From positions 62,001-126,000 of the forward strand of contig MCFE01000165.1 in the NCBI GenBank assembly GCA_002104905.1: 64,000 bases of DNA, in the 5' to 3' direction. Shown in pieces: positions 3,029 to 64,000 of the stretch. How positions within the stretch are numbered: position 1 is the stretch's first letter; each line of letters starts with the position of its first letter. The position numbers and the translations under genes are program-made. The notes under the pieces are model-generated. The model had not been told where the DNA came from. It worked only from the letters and a program-made list of their open reading frames with translations, and ran no database searches. Origin of the DNA: Basidiobolus meristosporus CBS 931.73. Taxonomy: Eukaryota > Fungi > Basidiobolomycota.

Positions 3029-4561
3029 ATGACTTCTACCAGCAAACAGAGCAATACCATCATCTTCCCTTTAACAGAGAGGTTTGATAGGAAGAACAAC
3101 AGACTTTGGAGAATCAAGATGTGGATCCACCTTGAGGAAAGAAAGCTATGGAACATAGTAACAGGAAAGGAAGTTGAGCCCAAAGGAACAGCAGAAGATG
3201 GGGAGAAGTTTCATGAGAAGGAGAGAAAGGCCTTCAATGCCATATGCATCAGTGTGCAAGACTCCTTCATTGGACAGATTCATGCCTCAAATACTGCCAA
3301 AGCAGCATGGGAATCCTTAGAGAAGATCTTTAGAGCAAAGTCAGTATCAAGCAAGCTTTATTTGAAACAAAAGTTCTTCAACATGAGGAAGAAGCCAGAT
3401 CATGACATGCTACAACTCATTACCAGAATGGAGACACTTGCAGAAGAACTTTACAGTATTAATGCTGGTGTAGGTAATGAAGAAAAGATACTCTGTCTGC
3501 TTTGCAGCCTACCAGACAAGTATGAGCCTCTCATACTTTCTTTTGAAAGCAGAGAAGTCAATTTGACTTTAGACTCCGTCAAAGGAAGACTTCTTCATGA
3601 AGAACTCAGACCTAATGATCAAGCAGAGAAAATTGAAGATAATGCTTTATTCAGTTCAGAAAGGCACACAGAAAAGAAGGGAAAGCAACAAAACCAAAGA
3701 AAACCTGGCTGCTGTAACTACTGTAAAAAGCCAGGACACTGGGCAAGAGAATGCAAGAAGAAACAAGCAGACAAAAAACAGAAACTAGAGCAGGCAAACC
3801 ATATAACTAATGATGAGCAGTTATTTGTAACTGTACAAGAGAGTGCAAGTGACCAAAGTAAAGAATGGTATATTGACTCTGGAGCATCACAGCATATTTG
3901 TGGTATAAAGGATTGGTTCAGCAACTTAAAGACTATTCCCGTAAGAAAGGTTTATCTGGAAGACAACTCTGCGGTGGAAGCTACTGCCAGTGGGTCTATA
4001 CAACCAAATATTAGTGATAACTCAGGGGCAACAACAGCAAAACTGACTGACGTACTTTATGTACCTGGAATAGCTAAGAACTTACTCTCAGTCAGTAAAG
4101 CAACTACTCAGGGACTGAAATTTGCTTTTACTAAGCTGAGCTGCTCAATATTGAGTGAAAATGGACAAAAATTAGCTTTTAGAATCAGAGATCACAATAT
4201 ATTCAAGTTACAATGCAAGATCATTGTACCTGAGCATGTCAGCATTGCTAAAACTGATGAAACCAGCTGGGAGACGTGGCATAGCAGGTTAGGACACATA
4301 GGGGAACTAAAAATGAGGCAATTGGTGAAAAATCAACTAGTTTTGGGCCTAAATTACATAATTCCAATCATATTGAATGTCTGTAAGGAAGGTTCATATG
4401 GCAAACAAGCTAGGCAGCATTTCAAGAGCTCAGGAGGCATCAATACTACCAAAATACTGGCTATTGTAAACTCAGATATATGTGGTCCTATGAGAACACT
4501 GTCCTCTGGAGCCAAGAAATACTTTATGACGTTTATTGATGACAAGACAAGATATACATGA
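3029..4561 (+). pseudogene. Copia gag-protease-GAG-pre-integrase ORF (510 aa), 5' part of an interrupted polyprotein
   Basis: UBN2-type gag, zinc knuckle CNYCKKPGHWAREC, protease WYIDSGAS, WHSRLGH, integrase start NSDICGPM...TFIDD. Confidence 0.95.
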
Positions 4562-10301: not shown

Positions 10302-13300
10302 ATGTTGGACAATCAAGGATGGAAGAATGCCATACAGCAAATCCTGGCCCAACAGCAACAGTTACTCCAGATCCTCAGCCAACAGCAACAAGGGATGACT
10401 ACCATGGCTCAGAGCCAGCAAAGCCCTGTCAAGAGCAACTTTAGTGTGATGGTCAACCAGTACCATGGCAGAGTCAATGAAAGCCTGGGAACTTGGCTCT
10501 TTCAGATTGAAGAAGCTTTTAGGGCTAAAGGAATTGCTCCAGAAAGCAAGGTACATTATGCAGCCTCTTACCTGGCAGACGCAGCTTTGCAGTGGTACCA
10601 CAACAGGATCAGGTCAGCCACCATGATGGGATGCTCTACAATCTCTACCTGGGATGAGTTTGTGTTAGAAATTCAGGATGCCTTTGCGCCTCCACACCAA
10701 CAGACACTACTAAGAAGAAAGTTGAAGACACTCAGACAAAAAGGAATGGTCCAAGAGTACATCTATGAATATAGATGTCTACTTGGGCAAATCTAAAGAA
10801 TGGACCCTCTGGATCAAGTTGAATACTTTATTGATGGGTTGAAAGACAGAACTTGTAAGGAAGTGAATTATCAAAGACCTCAGACTATGAAAGAAGCCAT
10901 CAAGATTGCCATTGACTATGACTCAGCTATGTTTGGAGTTGGGAAGCCCACAATGACTAATCAGAGAGGCTACAATCACTATAAAATGAGACAATCAGAA
11001 GCAGTGCCAATGGAAATAAATGCTCTGCAGAAGAATCCTACCTCAGAAGAATGTAAGAAGAAAGGTCTTTGCTTCAATTGCCACCAGCAAGGACATATTG
11101 CAAAGTACTGCCCTCTGAGAAGAAATGGACACCAGCCATCAAGAACCTTTGACCGTATTGAGGCCAGGGGGCATAGTAACATGGAGGATGAACTTGAAGA
11201 AGACTCAGAACTCACCTTCCACATGACAGAAGAATACCTATCCCAGATGACCTCAAATTCAGGAAAGCTATTATACTTGAATGGAGAAATCAATGGAGTA
11301 CCTGCCAAGATCATGATTGACTCAGGAGCATTGCATGAGTACATGTCAGAGCAATTTGCTCTGAAAGATGGAATCAACTTGGAACCTACCAAGTCAACTT
11401 CAGTCTCCACAGCTGATGGGAACTCTCACATAATCAACTGTATTACTCAGCCAGTAAGGGTGAAGATCAATGGCTATGAAGAAGATCTACAGGCCTATAT
11501 ATTTGGGAACTGCAAGTTTGACCTTGTACTTGGGAAAACCTGGCTATTTTGTTGTAATCCATCAATCAACTGGAGAACCCATGCTACTCAGATCCAGAAG
11601 GACAACAAGACCTATGAGCTATTACCTGCCAGACTGGATTTCAGCTTGGACAATTCCAGTATGTGTGAGACAAGTGAGCTTAGCACAACACAGTTCTGTA
11701 GAGCACTAAGAAAAGGCACTCAGATGTTCTTCATGGCAGTATTATAGGTGGATTCCTTGACTCCAGTACACCAGAAGGTCCAGACTCTTTTGAAGGAGTA
11801 TTCAGACGTATTTTCAGAAGAGCTTGTAAGCCTACCACCAGTCAGAGATGTGGATCATGCCATTGAAACAGGAGATAGCCCTCCAGTGAGTAAGACACCT
11901 TACAGAATGAGTCCATTGGAGTTGGAAGAGATGAAGAGACAAATAGATCAGTTATTGGAGCAAGGATATATCAGACCCAGCAAATCACCTTGGGGAGCAC
12001 CAGTACTTTTTGTGAAGAAGAAGGATGGAGCACTTAGGATGTGCATTGACTACAGAGCCCTCAACTCAGTTACTGTGAAGAATAAGTACCCCATACCTTG
12101 GATTGATGAGCTCTTGGACCAACTCAATGGAGCCACTATTTTCAGCAAGATTGGCTTCATGTCAGGATACAACAAGATTAGGGTGAAGTCAGAAGACATC
12201 CCTAAGACAGCATTCAGGACCAGATATGGACATTACAAGTACTTAGTCATGAGTTTTGGCCTCACCAATGCCCCTGCAACTTTCATGACCCTGATGCCGA
12301 CTGCCTTCCAGGAGTACTTAGACAAGTTTGTTATAATCTACCTAGATGATGTACTGATATACAGCAAGACAGATGAGGATTATGTGGTGCACATTGAAAA
12401 GGTCTTGAAGAAGCTAAGAGAGAGCAAGCTTTATGGCAAGCTACCCAAGTGTGAATTCTTTAAGGAACGCATTGAATATCTGGGACACATAGTGACTAGC
12501 ACAGGAGTAATCTTAGATCCTAAGAAGGTGGAAGTAATCAAGAATCTGAAGCATGCCCATAGCAAACAAGAGCTCAGATCATTCCTTGGAATGGTTTCCT
12601 ATTATTGGAGATTTGTTAAGTCATTTGCAAGTATTGCAGCCCCTTAACTGATATCTACAAGAAAGACAATACCTACAAGTGGGACATAGCTTGTGAGACT
12701 GCCTTCCAGATGCTCAAGAATGAACTTGCTAAGCTGCCAAGCTTAAGAATAGCAGACTTCAGAAAAGAGTTCACTCTGTGCACAGATGCTTCAGATTATG
12801 CAATTGGTGGAGTGCTGAGCCAAGAACACAAGGGAAAGGACTACCCTGTTGCCTTTGAATCTAAGAAACTGAACTCAGCAGAGAAAAACTATCCAGTCCA
12901 TGAGAAGGAGATGCTTGCTATAATACACTGTTTGAAGACATGGAGATGCTATATTGAATGAGTCAAATGCACTGTGAAGACTGATCATGCCTCCCTCAAG
13001 CATATATTTACTCAGAAGGTACTCTCTAGAAGAATGACAAGATGGAGTGAATACATTCAGCAATTTGACTTGGAGATTGTCTACTGCCCTGGAAAAAACA
13101 ACACGGTTGCTGATGCCTTATCAAGATTAGATCAAGTTGCACAACTCAACTTGGTGCATGAATCAGATTGGCCTAGCCTATTACCAAGGTACTTGGAGGA
13201 CCAAGCCATTCCTAATGAGGTGGATGAAGATATCAAAAAGATAATATGTGATGAAGCCAGCAAGTTTGTAGTACAGGATGAAACACTCTACCAAATTGAT

Positions 13301-33205: not shown

Positions 33206-34717
33206 CTAAATGTTCATACTGACTAGTCCTAATTTTGACCTAAGATATTCAAACTTGTCTCTAGCTAATGGTTTGGTAAAAATGTCTGCAATCATTTCAT
33301 CTGTAGGACAGTAAACTAAGCTAACTAAGTTATTCTCTATAGCTTCACGTATGAAATGATGTCTAATATCTATGTGCTTGGTTCTAGCATGAAAAGTTGG
33401 ATTTCTACCTAATTGTATACATCCTTGATTATCTTGAAATAAAGTAATAGGCGTTTTTTGACATAGGCCTAAATCTGTAAGCAGCTTTCTTAACCACATT
33501 GCTTCTTTTGTAGCTTCACAGGCTGCCATATACTCTGCCTCTGTGGTGGAAAGTGCTACAGTTGGTTGTTTTCTTGAATTACATGAAATTGCTCCTTTAC
33601 AGTAAAGAAAGGTGTATCCTGTGGTGGATCTTCTGTCTTCCAAATTTTGTCCCCAATCAGCATCAGAGTATCCCACAAGATCCTGTTCTGAATCCTTATA
33701 AGTGTATCTTAAGCAGATATCAGCAGTTCCTTTTAGGTATCTAAAAATCCGCTTAACTGCTGCAATATGATCAGATCCATAATTCTGATTATGCTGGCTG
33801 ACAACTCCCACTGAATATGAGATATCTGGACGTGTTCCAAGCATGATATACATCAGACTGCCGACTGTAGATTGATAAGGAAAGTCAGGGCTTTCAGATG
33901 GCACCAAGCTCTCTTGATTTGGTTGAGCTTTGACCAAGTTAAGGTTTGTCTCCATCACGGTAGCTGCCAGTTTACAGTCTTCCATTTTGTACTTCTTTAG
34001 TATATCTTGAATATACTTGGATTGGCTTAGGGTAATTGTCTGGGTACTTCTGTCTATGGAGAACTTAATCCCTAAGTAGTAACTAAGTTCTCCTAGATTG
34101 GACATCTTGTACTCCTTAGATAGGCTGGATTTAGTCTCTTCCAATGTTTCTAGATTATTGGTGGCTATAATAAGATCATCCACATATAGAGCTAATAAAA
34201 CTGGATGTGCTCTATCTGGCTTATAGTATATACTATAGTCAGCATTACTTCTTTTGAAACTCAAAGATTCCAAATAAGAATCTATCTTGCAATTCCAGGC
34301 TCTTGGTGATTGTTTGAGACCATATAGTGACTTTTTTAGCTTGCAGACCAAATGAGGGTTATTTTGATCAACAAACCCATCAGGCTGGTCCATATACACA
34401 TCCTCATCAAGTTCTCCATTCAAAAATGCAGTCTTTACATCAATTTGATGAATAAAAAACTTATATTTGGCTGCAAGAGCCAATATTAATCCGATGGAAT
34501 TAAACTTGGCTACTGGTGCAAAGGTCTCAGTATAGTCAAGTCCTTTTGTTTGAGAGTATCCTTTGGCTACAAGTCCTGCTTTGTATCTTTCAATTGTACC
34601 ATCAGCCTTGTATTTTGTCTTGAAGACCCATCTGTATCCAATTGATTTTTGGTTGATTGGTAATTTGACTAAGTCCCAAGTTTGATTTTCCATCAGGGCC
34701 TGATATTCCTCAGTCAT
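33206..34717 (-). pseudogene. Copia B RT-RNase H (503 aa)
   Basis: ETFAPVAK, LYGLKQSPRAW, LYVDDL, GYSDADW, TKHIDIRHHFIRE. Confidence 0.95.
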
Positions 34718-34738
34718 TGCAGATCTCCAAAACTTTGT

Positions 34739-36229
34739 CTAAGGGCTATTTAGGGCCTCTTTTACAGTCTGGGGCTCATCAATATGGACTGAATAGGCAT
34801 AGGCTAAGTTTGTACCCTCATTGATATAGTAATTTGGGCTATTTCTTGTCCAATTTGATCTCCGGGCATTTGATACTGGAATGATCACTTCTGGGAAATT
34901 CCTGGGCACTGATTCTGGCTGAACCATGGTTGTAGAGTCCTCTGGAGTGGAAAAATTTTCATTGTTTTGCTGTGACTCAATCCTGACAATTGATGGACTT
35001 GAGATCAAATTTTTGTCATCATCTGATGTGATTTTTTGTGAAAATTTTGAATTTTCATCAAACAACACATCCCTGGACTTGATAAGCTTCATTGCTTTGG
35101 TATTGTAGAGACTGTATGCCTTACTCTCATTGCAGTAGCCCAAAAATATGCATTTTACACTTTTTGGCTCAAATTTTGACTGATTTCCGGCCAGTTTTTT
35201 GGCATATGCTGTACACCCAAATATTCTTAGATGTTCTGCACTTGGTCTGTATCCATACCATGCTTCAAATGGAGTAGAATCATAAAGTATTCTGTTATAA
35301 CTCCTATTTTTAAGATATACAGCAGTGGCAACTGATTCTGCCCAAAAATCAAAGGATAATTTTTGATCATGGATCATAGATCTTGCCATATCAATTATTG
35401 ATCTGTTAGCTTGTTCTGCTACTCCATTTTGCTGCGGGGAGTATGGTACAGTAGTCTCTTGCTTTATCCCATGAATTTTGCAGAAGTGGATGAAGAGTTT
35501 TGAGGTATATTCTCCACCATTGTCAGAGTGAATTTTCTTGATTTTTTCACCAGTTTCTTTCTCCACCATGGCTTTAAACTCCCTGAACTTAGACAGAGCT
35601 TCTTCCTTTCTCTCCATAAAGTAGACCCATGTGTAACTTGTACAATCATCAATAAAAGTGATTAGATACTTCATCCCGCCTAAGGATAAATTTTGCATAG
35701 GTCCACACAGATCTGAGTGAATTAGATCTAATTTTTTCTTAGTTTTGATTAACCCAGAGCTCTTGAACGGTTGTCTGGCTTGTTTCCCATATATGCAGGC
35801 TTCACAGTGCTCCAAATTAGCTGGGGGATCAATTTTCACTCCAGAAATTAGCTGATCTTTGATCATTTTGCGCAAATAATCAAAATTGATGTGTCCAAAT
35901 CTCCTGTGCCAAAGCATTGGTGTTTCTTCACTTAAGTTACTTATATTGGCTTCCAAATATGATGGAATATAAGTCAACTTGTATAGATTCTGATCTCTGA
36001 TGCCCAAAGCAATATGGGCACCATTTTGATCAGTGATCCTGCATCCAGAATTGTCAAAACTGAAACTGAGTCCTTCTGCTGTGGCCTTGCTTACAGAGAG
36101 TAGGTTCTTGGCTATTTCTGGTACATAGAGTACTTCTTTAAAGGTCAGTGTATGGCTTCCTTTACTGCTTCTAAGGTTTACTTGGATAGTTCCTTCTCCC
36201 ACTGCATCAAGTGTTCTATTGTCACCCAT
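34739..36229 (-). pseudogene. Copia B protease end, GAG-pre-integrase and integrase (496 aa)
   Basis: LWHRRFGH, HSDLCGPM, HSDNGGEY, PQQNGVAE. Confidence 0.93.
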
Positions 36230-36372
36230 GAAACCTTCTTAATTGGAATTTCTTGATATTGGGTAAAAAGTTCTTTTTAGTGTGTAAAGTGTTGAGAAGC
36301 TCCAGAGTCAATATACCACGTCTGAGAATCCTTGTTTGTGGTCATATTTAGTGCAGATATGAATAGTCTATC

Positions 36373-37177
36373 TTAAGTTGTTGCAGCATTTCCATATTCA
36401 GGCTTCTTTTGCTGATAATCTCTCTTATTGAAACACCGGTCTGATGTGTGTCCTTTCCTTTTGCAGTAGTTGCAAAATAGGTTGCTGTTGCCTTTGTAGG
36501 GTCTTGGATACCTCCTTTGTTGGTTATCATTGCTTATTAAAGCATTTTCTTCTTCCTTCTTATTGGCGCTTGATTTTCTTAATTCTTCATCCAGGAGCCT
36601 TCCATATACGTAATTTAAGGTCAAATCTTCAGTTCTGGACTCTAGGGCTGATACAAGGCCCTGAAACTTGTCTGTCAGGCTATTCAGGATGGTAACTATC
36701 ACATCCTCATCAGTAGTTGGTATGCCCAAAGATTCCATCTCATCTACCAGCAGGGTAATTCTGTTAATTAGATTTTTCATTTCTTCTCCTGGCAGCATCT
36801 TTGTAGTAAAGAATTTTTGTCTCAGATACATTTTCTTAGCAGCTGAACATGACTCCAAGGTGTCTTCTAATGCCTTCCAGGCATTCTTTGCCGTTTTTGC
36901 TCTTGAGCATTGAATTAGCAATTTGTCCTTAACATCAAGGCAAATGCAGTTAAAGGCACTTTGTTCTTTCTTCTGGTACTTCAAGGCTTCCTCTCCCACG
37001 TTTTTAGGAGGGCATTCTTCTCCCATGACAATATCCCAAAGGCCTCTTTCTTGTAGCAGCATCTTCATCTTCACCTTCCACACTTGGTAGTGAGATCCAT
37101 CCAACTTTTCAGCAGAGGGAAAAATTCCAGTAATAGCAGTAGTAGACATTGCAGGGAGTGACAGCTTGGGGCTCATA
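36373..37177 (-). pseudogene. Copia B gag
   Basis: UBN2-type gag and CNYCKRKGHTSDRC knuckle; ends at TAA before protease. Confidence 0.9.
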
Positions 37178-38049
37178 GCCTGTTGTAAGAGTCTTGGAGA
37201 TATTGGAAGTGATTTGGAGAACAAGTAGATTATGAGGTTTTCACTTAATGATTTATTGAATGTAAAAGTAGTATTTATACTTTTACCTGGTCTTGGCATT
37301 ACAAACACGTAGAATAGGTTAAGGAAGGTCCCAAGAACATGTGTGCAAAGTTTGGGGCTGTTTGGACAACTTTGAGAATTATCATGTTCTGGGTACCTGG
37401 CATTTTGGTGAAAATATTCTAAGTAAATCCCGACAAGGAATTTGGTCAGTATTCTCTAGGATTTGAAGGTAATGATCTAAGTGACTAAGTTAGGTGAATA
37501 TTTAGGTGGAAATACGAATTTTTACAACATTCTTCTCCCATGACAATATCCCAATGGCCTCTTTCTTGTAGCAGCATCTTCATCTTCACCTTCCACACTA
37601 GGTAGTGGGATCCATCCAGCTTTTCAGCTGAGGGAAAAATTCCAGTAGTAGCAGTAGTAGATATTGCAGAGAGTGACAGCTCAGGGCTCATAACCTGTTG
37701 TAAGAGTCTTGGAGATATCAGCAGTGATTGGGAGAACAAGTAGATTATGTGGTTTTCACTTAAGGATTTATTGAATGTAAAGTAGTATTTATACTTTTAC
37801 ATGGTCATGGCATAGCAAACACATAGAATGGGTTAAGGAAGCTCCCAAGAGCATGTGTGCAAAGTTTGGGGCTGTTTGGACAACCTTGAGAATTTTCATG
37901 TTCTGGGTGCCTGGTATTTTGGTGAAAATATTTCAAGTATATCCCAAACAGGAATTTGGTTGGTATTCTCTAGGACTCAAAGGTAATGATCTAAGTGACT
38001 AAGCTAGGTGAATATTTAGGTGGAATTACAAATTTTTACAACATTATTC

Positions 38050-38265: not shown

Positions 38266-41200
38266 TGTTGCAAAAATTTGTAATTCCACCTAAATAATCA
38301 CCTAACTTAGTCACTTAGATCATTGAACTCAAATCCTAGAAAATACTGACCAAATTCCTTGTTGGGATTCACTTGAAATATTTTCACCAAAATACCAGGC
38401 ACCCAGAGTATGAAATTCTCAAAGTTGTCCAAACAGCCCCAAACCTTGCACATATGCTCTTGGGACCTTTCTTAATCTATTTTACATGTTTGTTATGCCA
38501 AGACCATGTAAAAGTATAATACTACTTTATATTTAATAAATGATCAAGTTAAAACCACATAATCTACTTGTTCTCCCAATCACTGCAAAATCTCCAAGAC
38601 TCTACAACAGGTTATGAGCCCCAAGCTGTCACTCTCTGCAATATCTACTACTGCTACTACTGGAATTTTTCCCTCTGCTGAAAATTTGGATGGATCTCAC
38701 CACCAAGTGTGCAAGGTGTAGATGACAATGCTGCTTCAAGAAAGAGGCCTTTTGGATATTGTCATGGGAGAAGAATGCCCCCCTAAAAATACGGGAGAGG
38801 AAACCTTAAAGTACCAGAAAAAAGAACAAAGTGCCTTTAACTACATTTGCCTTAATGTTAATGACAAATTGCCAATTCAATGCTCAAGAGCAAAAACAGC
38901 AAAGAATGCCTGGAAGGCATTAGGAGACACCAACCAGTCATGTTCAGCTGCCAAGAAAATGTATCTGAGACAAAAATTCTTTACTACAAAGATGCAGCCA
39001 GGAGTAGATATGAAAAATCTAATTAACAGAATTACCCTGCTGGCAGATGAAATAGAATCTCTGGGCATAGCAATTACTGATGAGGATGTGCTAGTTACCA
39101 TCCTGAATAGCCTGAAAGACAAGCTTCAGGGCCTTGTATCAGCCCTAGAGTCCAGAACTGAAGATTTGACCTTAAAATACATATATGGAAGGCTCCTGGA
39201 TGAAGAATTAAGAAAATCAAGTGCCAATACAAAGGAAGAAGAAAATGCTTTAATAAGAAACAATAACCAACAAAGAAGGTACCCAGGACCCTACAAAGGC
39301 ACCAGCAACCTGTTTTGCAACTACTGCAAAAGGAAAGGACACACATCAGACTGGTGTATCAAAAAATGAGATAATCAGCAAAAGAAGCTTGAATATGGAA
39401 ATGCTGCAACAACTGAGGATAGACTAATCATATCTGCACTAATATGACCACAAGCAAAGATTCTCAGAAGTGGTATATTGACTTGGGAGCATCTCAGCAC
39501 TTTACCCACTAAAAGGAACTTTTTACCCAATATCAAGAAATTCAATTTAAGAAAGTTTTTATGGGTGAAAATAGAACACTTGATGCAGTGGGAGAAGGAA
39601 CTATCCAAGTAAGCCTAAGAAGCAATGAAGGAAGCCATACACTGACCTTTAAGGAAGTGTTCTATGTACCAGAAATAGCCAGGAAACTACTATCTGTAAG
39701 CAAGGCCACAGCAGAAGTACTCAGTTTCAGCTTTGACAATTCTGGATGCAGGATCACTGATCAGTATGGTGCCCATATTGCTTCAGGTATCAGAGATCAG
39801 AATCTATACAAGTTGACTTATATTCCATCATATCTGGAAGCCAATAGAAGTAATTTAAATGAAGAAACACCAATGATTTGGCACAGGAAATTTGGACACG
39901 TCAAATTTAAGTATTTGCGCAAAATGATCAAAGATCAGCTAATTTCTGGAGTAAAATAGATCCCCCAGCTAACTTGGAGCACTGTGAAGCCTGCATATAT
40001 GGGAAACAAGTCAGATAAGCGTTCAAGTGCTCTGGGTTAATTAAAACTAACAAAAAATTAGATCTAATTCACTCAGATCTGTGTTGACCTATGCAAAATT
40101 TGTCCTTAGGTGGGATGGTGTATTTGATCACATTTATTGATGCTTATACAAGATACATGTGGGTTTACTTCATGGAGAGAAAGGAAAAAAGCTCTGTCTA
40201 AGCTCAGGGATTTCAAAGCCATGGTGGAGAGAGAAACTGGTGAAAAAATCAAGCAAATATGCTCTGACAATGGTGGTGAATATACCTCAAAACTCTTCAT
40301 TCACTTTGGCAAAATTCATGGGATAGAGCAAGAGACAACCATACCATTCTCCTCACAGCAAAATGGAGAAGCAGAATGTGCTTACAGATCAATAGTTGAT
40401 ATGACAAGGTCTATGATCCATGATCAAGAATTATCCTATAGTTTTTGGGCAGAATCAGTTGCCACTGCTGTATACCTTAAAAATAGGAGTTATAACAGAA
40501 TACTTTGTGATTCTACTCCACTTGAAGCATGGTATGGGTACAGACCAAGTGCAGAGCATCTAAAAATATTTTGGTGTACTGTATATGCCAAGAAACTGCC
40601 CAGAAATCAGTCAAAATATGAGCCAAAAATTGTAACATGCATATTTTTGGGCTACTGCAATGAGAGTAAGGCATACAGTCTCTACAATACCAAAGCAAAG
40701 AAGCTGATCAAGTCCAGGGATGTGTTACTTGATGAAAATTCAAAATTTTCACAAAATATGACTTCAGATGATGACAAAAATTTGTTCTCAAGTACACCAA
40801 TTGTCAGGATGGAATCAGAGCAAAGCAATGAAAATTTTTTCACTCCAGAGAGCTCCACAACCATGGTTCAGCCAGAATCGGTGTCTAGGAATATCCCGGA
40901 AGTGATCATTCCAGTATCAAATGCCAGGATACCCAACCAGACAAGAAATAGCCCAAAGTACTATATCAATGAGGGTACAAACTTAGCCTATGCCTATTCA
41001 GTCCATATTGATGAGCCCCATACTGTAAAAGAGGCCCTAAATATCCCTCAGACAATGCTTTGTAGATCTTCAATGACTGAGGAATATTAGGCCATGATGG
41101 AAAATCAAACCTGGGACTTGGCCTAATTACCAAACAGCCAAAAATAAATTGGATGCAGATGGGTCTTCAAGAAAAAATACAAGGCTGATGGTACAATTAA

Positions 41201-46729: not shown

Positions 46730-49700
46730 ATGGAAAGAAATCTAACTTCTCTATTAAAGGAGAAGTCATTTTCCTCAAGACCTTATGATTCACATGGCCA
46801 ATCCGGGTCCGGCCTCCTTCCTCACGATAAGCTAAGCCAACTGAAGCATAATTCTCACAGCTCTGCCTTCAGGGGATTCCCGCATTACTCTGAGGGTGCA
46901 AGCACTCGGTTCAATGCTGATAGGCCCGGCGTTCTAGGATCCCAAAATTCAGGAGTAAACCTGAATGGACGTCGCATGAGTCTTCCCTTCGGAAATAGTA
47001 GGTCTCAGGATCATCACCGCCTTTCCAGACTAGATACACACCTTCACCTCCCAGGTCTGGGTGATTTGCATTCACCTGAGCTAGCCCAACCGAAGCTTCC
47101 GAACTTCCTGTTGAGTGGAGACTATGATTCGCCAGATCTAGAGCATTCAATATATGCGGATTTCTTGAAAAGCACGACAAGCCGGCACCCATGGGAGAAT
47201 ATATCTTCTCCCTATTCTCATTTGTCTCATATGAATACCTCCAGTCTGCATAAAGCAAGCGGAAGAACGCCTGGGCAACCTCACCAACAACAGTGGGGTA
47301 TGAGTCACAGCCATCAAATGAGTGCCGAATTGAATGGACGCTATATTTTCAACCCCGAGAACAATTCCCATACAATATCCGACAGCTTGTGGGATCCGAA
47401 GGGCTCCAATACTGAACTGAAGTACCAAGGTGAGTTGAACCTAGTCCGAATGTGTGGATAGACTTGCTAACCAGGCTCTTTGCTGATATGGTGTAGCAAA
47501 CCAAATCCTCTCTTTGTTGCACTCCCAAGCACCACCGTATGACTTGAATCAAGAGCAGTATTCACATTCGGGTATGTTGGTTTGAAATCGCTAGAGCTCT
47601 TTATGCCCAAAGGCTTATTTTCTTGCGTATCTCTTTTATTCGTACCAACAGGCTATCCACTTAAACAGACTGGTCACGGTATTGTGAATCCCTTAGTATC
47701 CCATTTCGCAGTTTGGTCACTAATCCATGTACTTACCACAGATCAAAATCGGAAATTCCTCTTCGATAAATACTACTCCGAGGAAGTCCTGGCGGAAGGG
47801 TTGCAATTGGGAACTGTTCTAAAAGGGATTTTAAGAATAAATAAACGAAATCGCTCGGATGCGTATGTCGTCACAGAGGAGCTCGATCAGGATGTGTACA
47901 TTTGTGGCAATCGATTGAGAAACCGTGGCTTAGAGGGTGATACAGTGGCCATTACTCTATTAGACCAGCAGCAGGTACAAAGAACTCGTCAGCAGCGTAA
48001 CCGAGAGGCAGAAAGACGCGGTAGAAAGATCAAAGCCACCGACGAAGAGAATGATACCGAGCCAAAATACTATGGTCAGGTAGTCGCCATTTTGCAGCGC
48101 GGTGGAGGCAACGTATATTCTGGGACATTAATGCTGAACCGGCCGAACTCGAAATGTCAGGACTCCGAACAGCCGAAAAACCCTTCGAAGGAGCTGGAAA
48201 AGCCGACCATGAAAAAACCTCGTATTGTGTGGTTCAAACCATCCGACAAAAGACTACCGTTGATGGTTCTTCCTATTGATGAAGCCCCGCCGAATTATAT
48301 GGAGGACCATGTGGAGCATTCGAAACAAATATTTCTGGTTTCTATCAAGCGCTGGCCTCCTACCACTCTACATCCGTTTGCTACCCTAGTCGGAAAGCTC
48401 GGGAGCATCGGGGATATCGAAGCCGAGACTGCCGCCATTCTGGCTGATAATGACATTACCACCGAAGACTTTGACGAAAGCGTACAAAACTGTCTTCCGG
48501 CCATGCCTTGGTCAATCCCAGCGAGTGAATACCAATCGAGAAAAGATCTACGGGAAGATCGCATCTTCACCATCGATCCATCAACCGCCAAAGATCTGGA
48601 TGATGCTGTGTCCTGCAAGCGACTTGAAGATGGAAACTTCCTGATTGGTACACACATTGCTGATGCCTCATACTTTGTACGTCCAGGAACACCGTTGGAC
48701 CGAGAGGCTAGGAAAAGAGCCACTTCAGTTTATTTGATTCAGAAGGTAATACCTATGCTGCCGCCAGTGCTCTCTGAAGAGCTCTGCAGTTTGAACCCAG
48801 GAGTGGACAGACTAGCGTTTTCTGTGATGTGGAAGATGACACCAGATGCCAGGATCATTGACATGTGGTGTGGGAGAACAGTGATCAAATCGTGCGGAAA
48901 GCTTTCCTATGATGATGCGCAGAATGTGATTGAGGGGAATAGTCTTGGCCAGGACGTTCAAGTCTTTGGTCAGTCTCGCGAAGAGGTGGAAAAAGATATC
49001 CGCACTTTCCACAAACTTTCTCTTGCTCTTCGGAAGATGCGCTTTGACAACGGTGCCCTTTCCATCGACTCCATCAGATTGCAATTTGAGCTGGATCAAG
49101 GCTCTATTCCAACCTCGTGCTCGGTCTATAAACTCCAGGATAGCAATCGTCTTATTGAGGAATTTATGCTACTAGCAAACATAACCGTCGCACAACTGAT
49201 CTCCTCGGCATATCCAGAGCAGGCGATCCTCCGTCGACACGCCCCGCCCATCGAAAAGAGGATGAACGAATTTGTCAAGTCGGCCAGAAGCCTGGGCTAC
49301 GACATCGATCCTGAAAATTCTGGAACTTTGCAGCGGTCGCTGGCGGAGATCGAATCCCAGGAGGCTCAACAGATCCTGAAATTGATGTGCATCAAGCCGA
49401 TGCAACGGGCCAAATACTTTTGCACCGGCTTCATGGATGAGGAGGACTTCAAACATTTTGCATTGAACATACCTTTCTATACGCATTTCACCTCTCCGAT
49501 TCGTCGGTACGCAGACATCTTGGTTCATCGCACGTTGCAGCAGGCGCTCGTAGGGAACCCCCGATTCTTCTTGAGTAAAGAGGAGGTTCAAAAGGTTGCC
49601 ATCCAATGCAATGTCAAGAAAGACCACGCGAAAGCAGCCCAGGAGATGAGCTCGCAGCTTTACCTTTCCTATCACTTGAATTCACTGTTGGCGAAGCAGG

Positions 49701-50388
49701 GGGAGATCGAATGCGAAGCGGTGGTGATTGATATTCATGAAAATTCATTCGATGTGTTGGTTCCGAGGTACGGTTTGGAGAAGCGAATTCACCTCGAGAA
49801 ACTCCCCCTCCAAAATGCCATCTTCCGGGCGGACGACGTAAAAACACTTGATCTAGTTTGGACCACGGGCCAGGAAGAGGTCTCTGGAAGAAAGGAAGCG
49901 GAAGAAACCGAGCTTACCGAGGACTACGAGGAGCTTTTAACCGATGACTCCGAAGGCTTGGATATGCAAAGCCTTCGGCTAAAAGACACCCGGCATGACT
50001 CCTGCCCTAGTTCACCAAGATCATACTCCAACGGTAAGATACACAGAATGACCCTGAGCTTTTTGCCTGGCTAACCTTTATTCTCTTAGACTCCATGAGC
50101 GAGATCAACTCTCCCATCTCAGAGTCAAGCAAGACACGGTTTCCGAGCAATGACAGTGTAAGTAGCTACTCTTGCTCGCCCAAGAGCGTAGCACTCGAGG
50201 ACCTGGACATATGCACAAACAGTCTTGGACTGCTTGACCATATTGTGACCTCCAAGTGTGAGGCAGCCTCAAAAGGAGCCAATGTACAAACTCTTCGAGT
50301 CTTTGGTCACCTCCAGGTGTCCATCACAGTAGATATCACCAGATCCCCAGCAGTGATCGGGGTCATTGCCAAGAATCCGTACCACTAG
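46730..50388 (+). CDS. Dis3L2/Ssd1-family RNase II (RNB) protein with long low-complexity N-terminus (spliced; start uncertain, possibly 46584)
   Basis: GILRINKRNRSDAYV..RNRGLEGD cold-shock domain, FKPSDKRLP, FTIDPSTAKDLDDA, NRLIEEFMLLAN, YTHFTSPIRRYADILVHR. Confidence 0.92.
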
Positions 50389-50730
50389 GGGAGCTTGTCT
50401 ATTTATTATTTCCGCCCCCATGGCAAACAACATACCCTTGTAGAGTAGTAGCCATTTTTTGATAACCGAATTCAATATCTCCGCCGACCACTCTTCCCAC
50501 TCGCTACATAATGTAATAGAAGTACCGCTTCAAGAAAATAAACCACGGTATCGTTTGATTCCACCCATGGCTGATTTAAGCGCAATCCATAGCAATGGGG
50601 TTAAGTTACGCATCAGGATTATCCCATCAGTGGGACCCTGAATTGGATTCCCATCACGCTCATGTAGCTCGCTGCTGACCACTCTTGTACCCACTAGCAA
50701 CCACACGCCGCACAACGTAGATCTACCGGT

Positions 50731-52400
50731 ATGAGCTACACCTCAAGATCGGTGTCAAGTTCGCCGTCGCCTCAGATCAACCAAGACACCGCCCCTTCAG
50801 GTGAGTGCTTTGGACCCCACGCAAGGGGACTGACCCAACCGTAAGATTGAGTGGCCAAGCAGCAGCAACAGCACACCTAACCCCACGGCTTGCTTTTCTA
50901 AAACGGGGAACGAACAGTGACCCACCCAGGGAACCACGAAACGCCCAGCGAGCGAAAGCACCATGCGATACGGGAGCGTCTGACCAACCTAAAGAAAGAG
51001 TTTGTTTCCACTCGAAACGGGTACTCCCTCTCTATCCAATGCTTCTTTGACCGCCCCGTTCCTTCCCATACTCACCCTTGTTTCTTGTCCCCTACGGCCC
51101 ATCCTACCCTCTCTTCCCTCCCCTCACCGCTGTCACGCTCTTCTTCTCTTTCGTCACCGTCTCTGTTTCCTCCCCTCCTCCCCTGTGGTTAACTAGGATT
51201 TTCGCGGAGCTGATGTCAAGCTTAGAGAACGAGTTTCGACAAGTGTTTGAAGGTATGTTGGGTGAAAGTGGAAGGTGGAAAGGGAAGGGCGTGGAGTTTG
51301 GTGGGAAAAGGAGGCTCGGGCCCAGTGTTTAGGACGAAGTGAACAAAAAGAGGGCTGGAACGGCTAAACGGGTGTGAGAAACGCCTCCCACCCCACCGCC
51401 AAGGTACGCGGGACCCGAGACTAACGTGGTTTCTGTTGGTTCGGTTGGGCCGGAACCGTAGGGGAGTTCGAAGAATACGCCGAGCAGATAGAGGACCTGG
51501 AGAAGATCTGCGAAGAGAAAATCCTCGCCGCTCAGCTCCACCGGGACCACCACTTGGACCAACTCGAGAAGGATTACGAGGCGGAGTTGGAGCGCGCCCA
51601 ACAGGAGTATCTGGTAAGTGGGTTCCAGACTCGATTGGGATAATCCATATCCTCACGTTGCTTAACATGGATCCCTTCTTCACCCAACTTAACCTTGCCC
51701 TACTCACCATCCCTTGGCCTACACTTTCTCCTCCTCACCCTCACCCTCACCCTCCCTTGACTTTTCCTTCCCCCCCATGGCCTCCCCTCTCCAGAAAGAA
51801 AAGGAGTCCCTGAAGGAACGGATGCTCCTGCAAATCGAGGAGAAAAAGAAGAAACTGCGCGAGGACAAGGATCAGCTGGAGATCAATAACGGTTCGTATC
51901 GGGTCGGGTAGCCCTCTTGCGCCGGATTACTGACGGAGATTCGTGAACAGATATCGCCATTGAGGCCTCCGCCCGGGTCCACACCACGAGGAGGCACCGT
52001 AAGAGAGACGCTCAGCACCCGGAAGGGCGTACGAGCAAGAGACGTCACATGACGGATATCCTTTTCGTGATCGGTCGGCCGAGCTTGTGCTTGTGCTTGT
52101 TAAGTGCTAGTTGACATGTTTCTTCCTTGACTTGATTCCCTCCCCTCTCCCACCCGACGTGATGATCCTTCAGCTTAAAGAGCAGGATATCTCCCAGGAC
52201 GTTGCACTCATACAGAAGGTAAGTCACACTCGGACCCTCCCCTCCCTTCCCCCCCCCCACACCTGTCCTACCCAACACCCATTCATCCGGTCCACTCGTC
52301 CATGTAGCGTACCACCGAGTCCCCGGAAGGGGATGCCGCATCCAGCCACGCTCATGGAGCGACCCATAGAAAATCCACCACCACCAAACACCGACGCTGA
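50731..52400 (+). CDS. SDS3: Sds3/BRMS1-family Sin3-HDAC subunit (8 exons)
   Basis: Spliced frame gives RERLTNLKKEF...ELERAQQEYLKEKESLKERML...LREDKD...LQLKEQDISQDVALIQK, the Sds3-like pattern. Confidence 0.8.
52056..52153 (+). other. U12-type (minor spliceosome) AT-AC intron, 98 nt
   Basis: 5'SS ATATCCTTT, branch site TTCCTTGAC (52123-52131), 3'SS CAC; removal restores the frame, retention gives a stop. Confidence 0.9.
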
Positions 52401-52509
52401 ACCCCTACGACGAATTGAAATTTTATATGTATACTGTGGACATTGTTGAATAAATAGGCGGAGAATCCCTAGATGCGGAGCAATGGATGGGTGGAGGGAT
52501 CGGGTTGGG

Positions 52510-52620
52510 ATGAAGTGGAGTGGAGTGGAGTGGAGTGGAACATGAGCGAAGGGAAGGGAAAGAAGATGGAAAGGGAAAGGGAAATGGAAGGGAAGTGGAG
52601 GTGGAGGTGGAGGTGAGATA
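52510..52620. repeat. Purine-rich simple repeats (GGAGT)n, GGAA(A)-rich, (GGAGGT)n
   Basis: Read directly; intergenic. Confidence 0.85.
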
Positions 52621-53015
52621 TGGGTGGAGTTAGCACTGAGGCTGACCGACATCACCACCACCAATTTTACCAAATCCGCCGAATCCCACCACAATCGCCA
52701 CCTCTCCCCCAAGTGAAACCGAGCTCGAGCTAGAGCTAGAGTTCGAGGGTGGATTTTAATGAATTCCTTTATTGAACTCCATTAAATCCGATCCATCACA
52801 CCCGTTTCGACCGCCATGACGAAATGACAGGCTCGCCTCGGAACGGGCCTAGACCGCGTCTAGATTCCGCGCAGCGATTCGATGCGAGGCGAGGAGGTCG
52901 CCGGCAGCAGTGCAGCGCCGGTCTGGCAAGGCGGAGCGAAGGTTATTTAAGGTTACGCTCGGCGTACAGCATTCCTTAGAATCCCCAATCACCCACCCAC
53001 ACCCACACACCCGTC

Positions 53016-53366
53016 ATGTCTTCCAAACGTATGCTGCTAACCCTGTTCGGCGCCAAGGGGTGCGACCTCTGCCACGAAGCCAAGAACACCCTGCTCAAAG
53101 TGCGGAGAATTGTAAGTACCTCACGTAGTTGTTGACCCCACGTACCCCACACCCCACACCCACTCACCCGGGATTCCCATTTCCTTACGCAGTACCCGTT
53201 CGAGTTCAAGGAGATCGACATCAACCAGCCGGAGAACAAGAAGTGGGAGAAGTACACGTTCGACATCCCCGTGCTGCACCTGAACGGGGAGGAGATCATG
53301 ATGCACTCGGTGGACGAGAAGAAGCTGACGGACCAGCTGAAGAAGAAGATGTCCGAGCCCCAGTGA
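53016..53366 (+). CDS. Small glutaredoxin-like protein (DUF836/YDR286C-like), 2 exons, ~89 aa
   Basis: MSSKRMLLTLFGAKGCDLCHEAK...EIDINQPENKKWEKYTFDIPVLHLNG; CxxC motif. Confidence 0.9.
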
Positions 53367-53734
53367 TACGCCACCGAGGTACCGGTCTCTTCCCCCATAC
53401 CCCCCCCCCTTCGCTTCACCAGGACTTTTTGTATACTTGATTCTTTGTGACCTGTAATAAATGTCAATAGGCTTTTCGGATATGTGATACTTCATTGGGC
53501 TCCGTGGAACCATACAAGAGAGATATGAGGGGGGGGGTCTTGGAGGGTGGAGCGGACGGTTCGTTGGCGGGAAATGGGAAGGAGAGGTGGGGGAAGGAAG
53601 GAAGGAATGAATGAATGAGGGAGGGGGACCTTGGCTATCGCTATCTAATGACTATCTACACTGGGAATTCTGGAAAGTCCCGCGCTTGGATGACTTTTGG
53701 GAGGGTGGATGGGCTGGCTGGCCAATCCCCCGGC

Positions 53735-55650: not shown

Positions 55651-57964
55651 TCAGTCATTATTGGCGGAGAAAAACTTGGGCAGATTGGTTTGGGTTCGCT
55701 GAAAACCGGCCGCGCCCTGGGGAAGATCCTCGTAGATGAAGCTCGACTGGCTGGGGGGCGAGTGATGGCTGATGAACGCGGGCTTGGGCGAGAAGGTGGA
55801 CACCGAGAGGTTGCCGCTGGACCTGGTGTCGGTGGTGTCATCGATCAGTACCTCCTGGCGTAGACCGGCCGACTCTCGAAGATTCGCCATGTACCGATCG
55901 TACGGGGACAGGCTCATCCCGTCCGACAAGGAGACGAACGAGGGGTTGTCGCTCTTCGGTCGGTATGCATCGTACGCACTCTCGGAGGAGAACGGCCGCT
56001 CCATCTTGGGGAGGGTCGGGCCGCTCATGACACTCGTGGAGCCGGAGATGTGGCTCGAGGCACCTCGCGGGCGGGACGGGAGGTGCGAAGTGGAGGTGAT
56101 GACGGTGGCAGCCCCGCCGGAAGTCCTAGGTTTGGCACACCGGTGGATGAGAATCTCGACAAGACACATGATCGCCCGTACGGCCCAGAGGAGCTGGAAA
56201 AGCATGATCATAAAGACGCTGATCAGCCCGCACCAATCCTTGGCCTCGCTGCTTGCCTTGACCGCAGGCAGGTAGACGAAGAGAAGGGCCACCAGCACCA
56301 CCCTGAACGCTTGGTAGATCCCCTCCCACACGTTCACACTGGTGCTGACATATGGATGCACCCCGAGGATGGCGTAGAACAACGCCACCTCGCGACACAG
56401 CACGAGGACCAGCTGCACCAGACCATTGCTCTGGCCGAACGCGACAATCGCGGCAAGTACGAGGTGGTCGCCGAACCGCACCCAGGCGTACCGATAGGAG
56501 TTCGGGGTGTAGTTGTTGTAGAGTGGCCCGAACATGAGTATGTAGAAGGCGTCGATGAAGATGGTGGACGATTGGGAGAACTTCGTCAGGTAGATCAAAG
56601 AGCCACCTATGATGGCGAAACTAACCACCACGACCAGTACGGCGGCGACCACGGTCAGCCAGATCGGATCGTGGATCATCAGCTGGTTGAAGGCGAAGAG
56701 GGTGAGCGGCAAGTGGAACAGGAGCAAGAAGCGTAAGATGTTCCCTACATGGGATGGAGCGGGTTAGACGAGGTGCAGCGAGGGTGAGGGGGTGAGGGGG
56801 TAAGGGGGACTGGCGTTACCTAGCGTGAAGGCGAACAGCTTCTTCTGCGAATAGGAGGACCCATCCGATCTCATCACCAGCACGGCCACCCCGATGATCA
56901 ATCCACTAACCACCAACACCGCCAACAGAACAAACGCCATGAGGATGAGCAAGGAGACCAGAAGTCCACTGGGCTCAAGCCCCACGAAATGAGTGAAAAA
57001 GGTGATGCCGCGGTCTTCGATGGGCAGATGGGAGCTGGCCTGGGCTTTGATGGCCCCGCCGTTGGTGACCGAATCGCCCAGGATCCCCATGACGGAGTGC
57101 AGCCTGAATAGGAACTGCTGATAGAACAGAGAGTAGTCCAGATTGAGCAGCCCGAGAACCACCAGGAACTGAAGGTGGTACACAAGATCGAAGAAGCTCG
57201 GGTACCGGAGGCTTTGGGCCTGTCGAGTCACCCCGAGGTTCGAGGTGTACGCGAAGATGTCCTGCACGTCCCCGAAGAAGTAGGCGAATGCCAAGGTGAG
57301 AATGGGTAGTGCCAAGGTGCACAGCATCACAATGGTGACGATATGGTTGTACGTCTCCTCCGTTTGACTAACCAGCACCGTGAAACATCCGTACTCTCCA
57401 TTGTTTTCGTCGATCAGAACCCCGGTCACATTGACGTCAACAAATGGGCTGTAGTTCGGAACACTCAGGACCTTTGGAGGAGGGAGGGGAAGCAATGAGT
57501 ACGGTATGATATGCCAGTCAAACACAAACCGTCCCCCACCTTGTTCAGGGTCACGTTACCCGCACTGGTTGGACACTTGCCCAAAGACGCGCACAGGTCG
57601 GGGTCTACTACGGAGCTTCTGTAGTTCAGAGTCGACACGATGTACAGAGCGGTGGCAATCTTCCCTATAGAAGCAGTCAATAAACCACCTTCACAACCCA
57701 AACGCACGCAACGGTCCTACCTGGAGTTGACGTGGAGACGCCCACAAGGGAGTCCTTGGCTACACCGGTCACCTGGATATCGATGGACCGGCTGCCTATG
57801 TCGAATTTGGCGGTGCCATCTATGGGGTCCCAGGAATGGGCGGGGTTGCCGCAACGCAGAAACGGGGAATTGCTTAATACGCTTTGGCTAGATAGAAGCG
57901 CTATGAAGAGGGTGAAGAGGGTGGGGAGTGAAAAGCGGGTATATCGGGTTTTCGGGGGAACCAT
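55651..57964 (-). CDS. TRP-like multi-pass membrane protein (Flc/Pkd2-type, TRP_N + TRP), spliced
   Basis: Signal peptide, lumenal domain (YGCFTVLVSQ), FFDLVYHLQFLVVLGLLNLDYSLFYQQF, FGPLYNNY, hydrophobic helices, Ser-rich tail. Confidence 0.85.
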
Positions 57965-61500: not shown

Positions 61501-64000
61501 TCCAGAGCACGTGCTTGCTCCTCCATCTAAGTAGTTGATTCGAGGGTTACTATGGTGCAGGTGGCTGAATCGTAACGACGCCCGAATACCTTGCTTATCC
61601 CGTCAACTATACCCATCAAGTGCATTTGCTCCAAGTTGGAGATTCCGTTTAGAGACTTTTTTGTCAGATGATCGACGAGGGCTTCGGCCTGGACTGTGTT
61701 GAATTCTTTGGATTCTGCTTGCTTCTGTCTGAGACCCACAGGTTGAGGATGTTGGTCGTGCTGGAGTGATGTGCTGTATACTTACTTCCAAGCATCCCTA
61801 TCCACGTATTCATCGAAAAGCTGGTTGTATTTTTCCTGCGTAAACACCGGCATCTGTTACAGCGTGAGTATGCTATCTCTATTCCAAGTGAGTGATTGGT
61901 GTAACCTTGTTGTGGATGAAGTACTTCATAGGAACTGGAGGCACTTCGGAGCTTGCATTGGTGGTTTTTGCAAACGCCTCCATGTAGTTGTACAGCTGGG
62001 TCAAGATATACTTGACAACATTTACTTTGCCTAGATCGGCCAAATGGGACAGAGGTTAGCAAAGCGCGTTCTCCGCTATCAAGCAGGCCTACGGTACCCC
62101 AGAGCATGTACTGCGTAAGATTGTTGGGATGGTGGTGCGGTAGAGGAGCTCTTTCGGTGATAAGCGAGTGGATCAATGATGGGCTGGAGTTGTTTGCTTT
62201 TCAAAATAGTCAAGTCAGTTCCCTGCTTGAAATGGGGCACAAAAAATTCACCAAACCTGCGCGGTCTTTTTGGGTGATGATCCATTTGGAGAAATACCAA
62301 AGCTGGTTTCCTGTGGCGACAATAAGTCCTTCTTTCGACCAGTCTGCACTTGTGATTCCTTGCGACGACAGTCTAACGGAAGAATGCAGGTTATTCTGGA
62401 GTCAGCACGTCGCTAAAACCAACAGGACTTACTCTAGCATGTTGATGGTTCCATATTCACACCAAACCGAGGATTTCGAGAATTCGTCATGCTCTTTGTT
62501 GACCAACAAACGTAATCCGATTTTTAAACACAAGTGCCAATATATGCTCTCCAAGTGAGGTGGCATAGAGCTCAATCGCAACTAGCTGATTGTTTTCCCT
62601 TGGATGTTTGTGAGTAAGAAAAGTTTTGAATTGGATGTGGACGGGTATTCACCTGATGGACATCTCAAATTCTCTGAGCACTTTCGTTGCGTGCATCGAC
62701 ACTCCGTAGAATCGAACGTAGAGTTCAGTTTCCTGGTACGTTGCTACAAAGAACTTGAGTGGATGACTCTCTCAAGAAGATCACATCCCCTGTACCTGTC
62801 ACGATTTTTCCGAATGGACTCCATCGGATGTGTTCCACACGTTCGTCGAAACCATAGTTAACTAGCTCACTCCAGGACCCATCAGAGGTGGTAACGGCCC
62901 AGCAACGAAGTACTCGGTTGTCCTCAGAAAAAGTAACCAAGTCAACCTGATCATTGTTGCTGCTGACAAAGGCAAAGGAATGGACATCTGTCTGGCATTT
63001 TTTCCCGATGACTGAGATTTTTTCTTGGACTGGCAATGAATGGCGTGAGCAGAAAGTTCCAAAAATCTGCGAACCTAGAAAGAGAATGTGAGCAAAGGGA
63101 ACGGAGCAACACTCTTGGCAAAGGGCTTACCTGTTAAAGTGATGGACCAAACGAAGACGGTGTTCTGATTTGGACTAAATCCGTACACGTAATACCGATC
63201 AGCATTCTGCTCGAGCTGAAAGACGACATCAATGGTGGACAAAGGATACTCCGTGTCATAGTCATCCAAAGGAAACCGATATCTCCACGCCTCATTGGTT
63301 TCATACGTATAAACACCAATGCTTTTCCCATCGTACAGCAGGATTACGTTTCCTATAGAAACGTGAGTAGAGCCATCCTCACGTATAGACATGGTCTCAA
63401 TAAACGACAAACCTTTGGGTAAACGCTGCGCAAATCTCATAGTGCTACCCACAAACTGTGAGATGACCTCGGTCATTGGATCCTTGTGGCTTTTTCCAAA
63501 CTACCATGAAAAGACAATTACTACGCATTCAAGAGCCATGGACCACACTGAACGTATCGAACCCTGGGGGCGCTAGCTTCCCAAATGCCGATCTCCCCGT
63601 CGTCTGAGCAAGTGATGACGTTGTTATCGTAGAGGGAGCCCAATATGGACGAGACAGCTCCACGAGGACCGCTCAATGATCGCTTCAAAAACAGCGCAGA
63701 GTTGCTGGCTTCGGTGGTTATAGAAGTATAATCCAAAGTGTAGAAATCAATGGAGCCCTGAGGATGCTGAACTAGGAATGTGATTTCGGTATTTTGTGTT
63801 ACACCTACAGTAACGCATTGGTTAGATGTCTAACGAGCGGTGGTGAGCGCAAGTATTGTACCGCACCATAATCCTCTTCGGGATACTTGATGGACGCCAG
63901 CACTTTCTCATTGAACGAAGCAAACGCTGTAGATGAGAGGAAACAGGGCATTTTGAGCAGTAAGGAAAGCGTAGGTTTCTCTTGGGGATAATCGTCCAGA
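58502..64000 (-). CDS. RAV1: RAVE complex subunit Rav1 / DmX-like WD40 protein, spliced, 5' end beyond the window
   Basis: KDPVESTIYYLALKKVKLLHSLW...FLANDFTEPRWQQAALKNAFVLLGKQRY (Rav1p_C), LGCPLLALE; frame open to the window edge. Confidence 0.92.
59923..60072 (-). repeat. Four in-frame 36-nt repeats in RAV1 (T[AS][DE]NLFDDY...)
   Basis: AENLFDDYEAPK-VTADNLFDDYTPA-ITSDNLFDDYTPA-ITADNLFDDYETS. Confidence 0.93.

Follow-up and report, generated by a model that had tools for sequence, protein, structure and literature searches.

A probable U12-type AT-AC intron in the Sds3-like gene of Basidiobolus meristosporus, shared in position with human Sds3-family genes

The Sds3-like gene and its product

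In the 64,000-nucleotide window (the whole stretch of DNA that was analysed, taken from contig MCFE01000165.1 of B. meristosporus assembly GCA_002104905.1), an Sds3-like gene adjoins an 830-aa open reading frame (47582-50074) of a Dis3L2/Ssd1-type RNB exonuclease, whose best match, with 80% identity, is found in B. ranarum. The gene model was assembled by reading positions 50400-53400 for obvious splice sites (Table 1), and six of its seven introns are ordinary GT-AG introns, whereas the remaining one, the sixth in order, is bounded by AT and AC. The spliced product of 246 aa does not differ in a single residue from the GenBank protein ORX95904.1, and the gene range annotated on the contig coincides with that of the model; over the 9670 bases compared, contig and window are 100% identical. 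The initial annotation, which was made from the sequence, had expected standard gene predictors to truncate this gene; this expectation failed, since the public protein equals the AT-AC spliced product.

Table 1. Positions of the Sds3-like gene, its AT-AC intron and the retrotransposon remains in the window
Feature	Position	Strand	Basis or remark
Sds3-like gene, ORX95904.1 / K493DRAFT_314767	50731-52400	+	8 exons, 246 aa product
Exon 1	50731-50800	+	model from splice sites
Exon 2	50918-51020	+	model from splice sites
Exon 3	51197-51252	+	model from splice sites
Exon 4	51462-51613	+	model; Pfam Sds3 match
Exon 5	51795-51891	+	model; Pfam Sds3 match
Exon 6	51951-52055	+	ends ...KRRHMT + G, first base of the split Ala codon
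Probable U12-type AT-AC intron, 98 nt, phase 1	52056-52153	+	sequence signals; junction in public protein
5' splice site ATATCCTTT, predicted U11/U6atac recognition	52056-52064	+	matches U12-type consensus /ATATCCTT
In-frame TGA met upon intron retention	52112-52114	+	read-through translation
Branch-point sequence TTCCTTGAC, predicted U12 pairing site	52123-52131	+	branch A 52130
3' splice site CAC, first AC past the branch site	52151-52153	+	sequence read
Exon 7	52154-52218	+	encodes (A)DVMILQLKEQDISQDVALIQK, conserved C-terminal Sds3/BRMS1 motif
Exon 8	52308-52400	+	model from splice sites
Copia-type gag, integrase and RT ORFs	3029-4561; 33206-37308	+; -	
Gypsy-type protease and RT	10800-12647	+	
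Integrase fragment	40137-41090	+	

Regarding the identity of the product, exons 4 and 5 match the Pfam profile PF08598 colinearly (profile positions 40-86 and 88-118), each staying below the cut-off when taken singly, and PF08598 is precomputed for the complete ORX95904.1. Moreover, the protein matches yeast SDS3 in the PDB (E 8e-11) as well as S. pombe sds3 and the coiled coil of mouse SDS3, and the cluster that contains it in the Atlas is named 'Sds3-like'. In the PDB comparison, the product of exon 7 aligns weakly with LQSLKPDEVTEDISLIRE at the C terminus of yeast Sds3, and the C-terminal 43 residues had no match in the PDB search. Querying 1.8 billion representatives with exon 4 returned two proteins, both from Basidiobolus; a word-index search for Sds3 homologues recovered B. 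ranarum and one chytrid only, and a metagenome scan for Sds3 relatives found none. The assignment to a fungal Sds3/BRMS1 gene, already proposed from the sequence, is backed by PF08598, by the yeast SDS3 match and by the Atlas cluster, and the Basidiobolus protein can be inferred to act as a subunit of the Sin3-HDAC corepressor.

Splice signals, reading frame and conservation

The sixth intron opens with ATATCCTTTTCG at 52056 and closes with CCAC at 52153, and the distance from the branch A to the last intron base is 23 nt, at the upper end for U12 introns. Between the branch site and 52152 there is neither an AG nor an AC dinucleotide. Joining 52055^52154 gives acg g/cc gac (a slash marks the splice site here and below), which reads ...KRRHMT-A-DVMILQL... 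across an Ala codon split in phase 1. When the intron is read through, the product continues as ...HMTDILFVIGRPSLCLCLLSAS, that is, with 19 foreign codons before the TGA. The features by which U12-type introns are recognized were found throughout: the 5' site, a branch site of the form TCCTTRAY lying roughly 10-30 nt upstream of the 3' end, AT...AC ends at an in-frame junction, and signals that are kept beside a diverged interior. The coordinates, signals and junction given in the initial annotation agree in every detail with this reading of the sequence, and its statement that retention meets a TGA, with loss of the C-terminal motif, was confirmed by the read-through translation.

In B. ranarum the orthologous gene, K7432_009799, follows immediately after the Dis3L2 orthologue, in the same order as in the window, and mapping its protein on the DNA places the orthologous intron (95 nt) at L001:3999-4093, at the same Ala codon and in the same phase. 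It begins with ATATCCTTTC, and the 5' site ATATCCTTT and the terminal CAC are common to both species of this syntenic pair. In contrast, the two introns differ in length (95 versus 98 nt) and in the gap from branch A to end (10 versus 23 nt), the branch site of B. ranarum being the consensus TCCTTAAC, and their interiors are unrelated. When the two introns are aligned, the exons on either side match, as does the 5' site, with an interior no better than random, and a 5' site kept beside an unalignable interior is the pattern that would be expected of a functional splice signal. Compared with L001:4077-4093 of B. ranarum, the longer branch-to-end gap of B. meristosporus (52123-52153) is occupied by a C/T-rich run, ttgattccctcccctctccc.

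Four isoforms are annotated for K7432_009799 (L001:3001-4332), differing in the retention of other introns. HMTADVMILQ is present in all three that reach the region and the AT-AC junction is altered in none; as transcript support for the junction these isoforms are no more than suggestive. One isoform, with intron 5 retained, stops after 177 aa; another keeps the last intron and ends in IQKVRTSRK; an alternative 5' end was also recorded.

With respect to chance, RTATCCTTT has three occurrences in the window where 1.6 would be expected, and TTCCTTRAC has five where 1.5 would be; the two 9-mer motifs are by themselves weak evidence. A loose composite pattern, which tolerates up to 1000 nt between the 5' site and the branch signal, was present in about 20% of simulated windows. 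Since such a pattern is common by chance, significance rests on the junction, understood as the in-frame join of the exons, on the match with the annotated protein, and on conservation in B. ranarum and in the human paralogues. On the signals, the frame, the identity with the annotated protein and this conservation, all of them directly observed, we infer that positions 52056-52153 are spliced out and that their removal depends on the minor spliceosome, so that this would be a U12-dependent AT-AC intron of the B. meristosporus Sds3 gene, with a probability of about 0.9.

Other accounts of the region

[quoted passage not shown] We hold this to be very improbable, given that the protein encoded by exon 7 is conserved in both Basidiobolus species, in a chytrid, in yeast and in animals, and such conservation of a downstream exon across fungi and animals makes sense only if it is translated. 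Furthermore, the comparison with B. ranarum found the splice signals kept and the intron interior not kept, which also speaks against predominant retention.

Harder still to credit is excision of the region as a GT-AG intron by the major spliceosome, with the AT-AC signals being coincidental. The initial annotation had seen no plausible GT-AG alternative, which calls for a correction: ten stop-free, in-frame GT-AG combinations exist on paper, for instance 52067-52173 (GTGATC donor, cttcAG acceptor), and the loose U12 composite pattern is, as noted, not very rare by chance. However, the donors on offer (GTGATC, GTCGGC, GTGCTA and similar) are poor when set against the GTGAGT, GTATGT and GTAAGT used by the same gene, and nine of the ten options would remove part of the ADVMILQLKEQ block, which has one E/D change in B. 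ranarum and aligns with animal BRMS1. The tenth (52067-52110) would keep DVMILQL, but with an intron of 44 nt and with about 19 unrelated residues inserted. Moreover, the GTGATC donor at 52067, the most usable one and the start of five of the ten options, is missing from the B. ranarum orthologue, and HMTADVMILQ is present in the annotated proteins of both Basidiobolus species.

Most improbable of the three is removal of the AT-AC intron by the major (U2-type) spliceosome, because, although U2-type AT-AC introns occur and 85 major AT-AC introns have been mentioned (PMC8280824), a ATATCCTTT 5' site with a TCCTTRAC branch site near the 3' end is a U12-type signature that does not suit the major-type consensus, and the homologous human introns belong to the U12 class and respond to the loss of minor-spliceosome factors.

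Human counterparts, age and possible regulatory role

In humans, SUDS3, BRMS1L and BRMS1 all carry a U12-type, phase 1 intron at the corresponding place, ahead of the C-terminal motif (PMC8280824 supplements). That of SUDS3 is AT-AC, with flanks CCTGCTCCAG/ATATCCATTT and CAACAC/CCCAGC that read P-A-P-A-Q; that of BRMS1L is likewise AT-AC, with GTTGTTTCAG/ATATCCTTTT and TTCAAC/GTCCAT, read V-V-S-G-P; and that of BRMS1 is GT-AG, with CTGGTTTCTG/GTATCCTTTC and CACAG/GCCCAT, read L-V-S-G-P (PMC8280824). The comparison of position and phase with these three genes, which the initial annotation had proposed as a check, found a matching point and phase 1 in all of them, and the alignment that it drew between the junction and the G/PYIVYML region of animal BRMS1-like proteins is reflected in the VVS-G-P of BRMS1L and the LVS-G-P of BRMS1, both in phase 1.

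Human SUDS3 intron 7, a standard U12 test intron in minor-splicing assays, resembles the Basidiobolus intron in being AT-AC and phase 1, in splitting an Ala codon as G/CC and in lying immediately before the C-terminal motif; exon 8 of SUDS3 (primer) encodes IMEDLRTL, the Basidiobolus counterpart of which is ISQDVALI. The human intron differs in size (about 1 kb versus 98 nt), in its 5' site, ATATCCATT, and in its branch site, TCCTTTAAC. In BRMS1L and BRMS1 the phase 1 intron interrupts the codon just before PYIVYML, which corresponds without gaps to the Ala before DVMILQL, and the ATATCCTTTT of BRMS1L is identical to the Basidiobolus 5' site, as is the TTCCTTGAC branch site of BRMS1 to the Basidiobolus branch site. 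On the other hand, the codon split in these two genes is Gly rather than Ala, their introns measure roughly 1 kb or more, and in BRMS1 the subtype has switched to GT-AG. The spacing from intron to motif in SUDS3 is presumably one residue off that of Basidiobolus Sds3, and the human reading frames, together with the ungapped BRMS1(L) alignment of PYIVYMLQEIDILED with DVMILQLKEQDISQD, agree with the alignment drawn in the initial annotation.

Since U12 introns stand at the same codon in homologous genes, and coincidence is implausible, the intron would predate the split between fungi and animals; and since a U12 intron is common to SUDS3, BRMS1L and BRMS1, it would also be older than the SUDS3/BRMS1 duplication in animals. 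Thus, the suggestion of an ancient opisthokont intron gained from the phase 1 U12 introns at the matching site of the three human genes, and these comparisons support the view that the AT-AC intron was inherited and predates both the fungus-animal split and the family's duplication in animals. In the chytrid Blyttiomyces sp. JEL0837, the last exon of the BRMS1-like gene (L002:2501-3497) crosses the AT-AC site with no intron, and the gene keeps the two preceding intron positions, EYL/S and NT/D, in what looks like a precise, lineage-specific intron loss. As this homologue has no intron at the site, the AT-AC intron position is not universal among fungi.

Concerning the host, B. meristosporus has been published as the species with the highest minor-intron density among fungi (0.554%, n=249; PMC10639083), and a second survey gave 237 minor introns; it also recorded U11, U12 and U6atac with high confidence for several zoopagomycote species and, for B. 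meristosporus itself, a putative, divergent U4atac (PMC11347168). The host deduced from the sequence, an organism outside the Dikarya with a minor spliceosome, is in line with both reports; the novelty that this deduction implied is not, for the species was already on record as the fungus richest in minor introns (PMC10639083; PMC11347168). The published minor-intron sets were drawn from the very genome and annotation that contain the Sds3 intron, which, lying within an annotated CDS, was available to both surveys and presumably belongs to the sets of 249 and 237. The Sds3 AT-AC intron is very probably genuine and is correctly annotated, and its host genome was known beforehand to be rich in introns of this type; with the organism, its minor spliceosome, its wealth of minor introns and the gene model all public, little is new. 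The modest value added lies in one U12 intron that keeps a single codon position from a zoopagomycete fungus to all three human paralogues of the Sds3 family, and the loss of the AT-AC intron in a chytrid that keeps the neighbouring intron positions forms part of the same clean example.

In the established course of U12-type splicing, from which the pairing steps given here are drawn, ATATCCTTT at the 5' end of the intron would be paired first by U11 and later by U6atac, and U12 would pair with TTCCTTGAC, leaving the branch A at 52130 bulged out; position 7 of TTCCTTGAC is G where the consensus has A, and this G would give a G-U pair with U12. U6atac would displace U11, and the first downstream AC (52152-52153) would serve as the 3' end, by which splicing would unite the split Ala codon and bring the C-terminal motif in frame. 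Left unspliced, the message would encode a protein that stops 19 codons into the intron and in which the C-terminal motif is absent, a consequence that follows from the sequence. This motif is what we take, from mouse SDS3, to be the Sin3-contacting part of Sds3.

In this context, one may speculate that a slowly spliced U12 intron has persisted in all Sds3-family genes for more than a billion years owing to its site directly before the C-terminal motif, a proposal that we consider unlikely. If it were true, retention would lead to a truncated protein or to decayed mRNA, and the activity of the minor spliceosome would determine how much complete Sds3 is made, and hence the assembly of Sin3-HDAC, in Basidiobolus, much as already proposed for human BRMS1L. 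Minor introns acting as rate-limiting switches have been published, with BRMS1L named as released when U6atac rises (PMC3728624), and human precedent for the switch idea comes from BRMS1L (PMC3728624) and from SUDS3 intron 7 (PMC8280824). Furthermore, the introns listed as retained on CENATAC loss include A-type (AT-AN) minor ones, among them the introns of SUDS3 and BRMS1L (PMC8280824). Sds3 would be a convenient gene, in a culturable fungus, for the study of minor-intron retention as regulation of a chromatin complex.

Elsewhere in the window, two occurrences of GTATCCTTT were considered as U12 5' sites and rejected: that at 34556(+) is antisense within a copia-type retrotransposon ORF and that at 63241(-) falls in what is apparently coding sequence, with no branch site nearby. 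An Rfam scan of the 64-kb window detected no snRNA or other family. A nest of LTR retrotransposon remains makes up positions 1-44000, the initial two thirds of the window, with a GC content of 35-43% against 44-57% in the genic third. On the 3' side of the Sds3 gene, the spacer at 52490-52620 holds purine-rich simple repeats (GGAGT and GGAAA/GGAAG units), and it is followed by a small two-exon gene at 53016-53366 (+) that starts MSSKRMLLTLFGAKGCDLCHEAK and has, by eye, a glutaredoxin-like (thioredoxin-fold) appearance. Further downstream, a gene for a TRP-like ion channel (Pfam TRP, PF06011) is represented by ORFs at 55651-57525 (-), ahead of which the public annotation places a small Arf/Ras-type GTPase gene.
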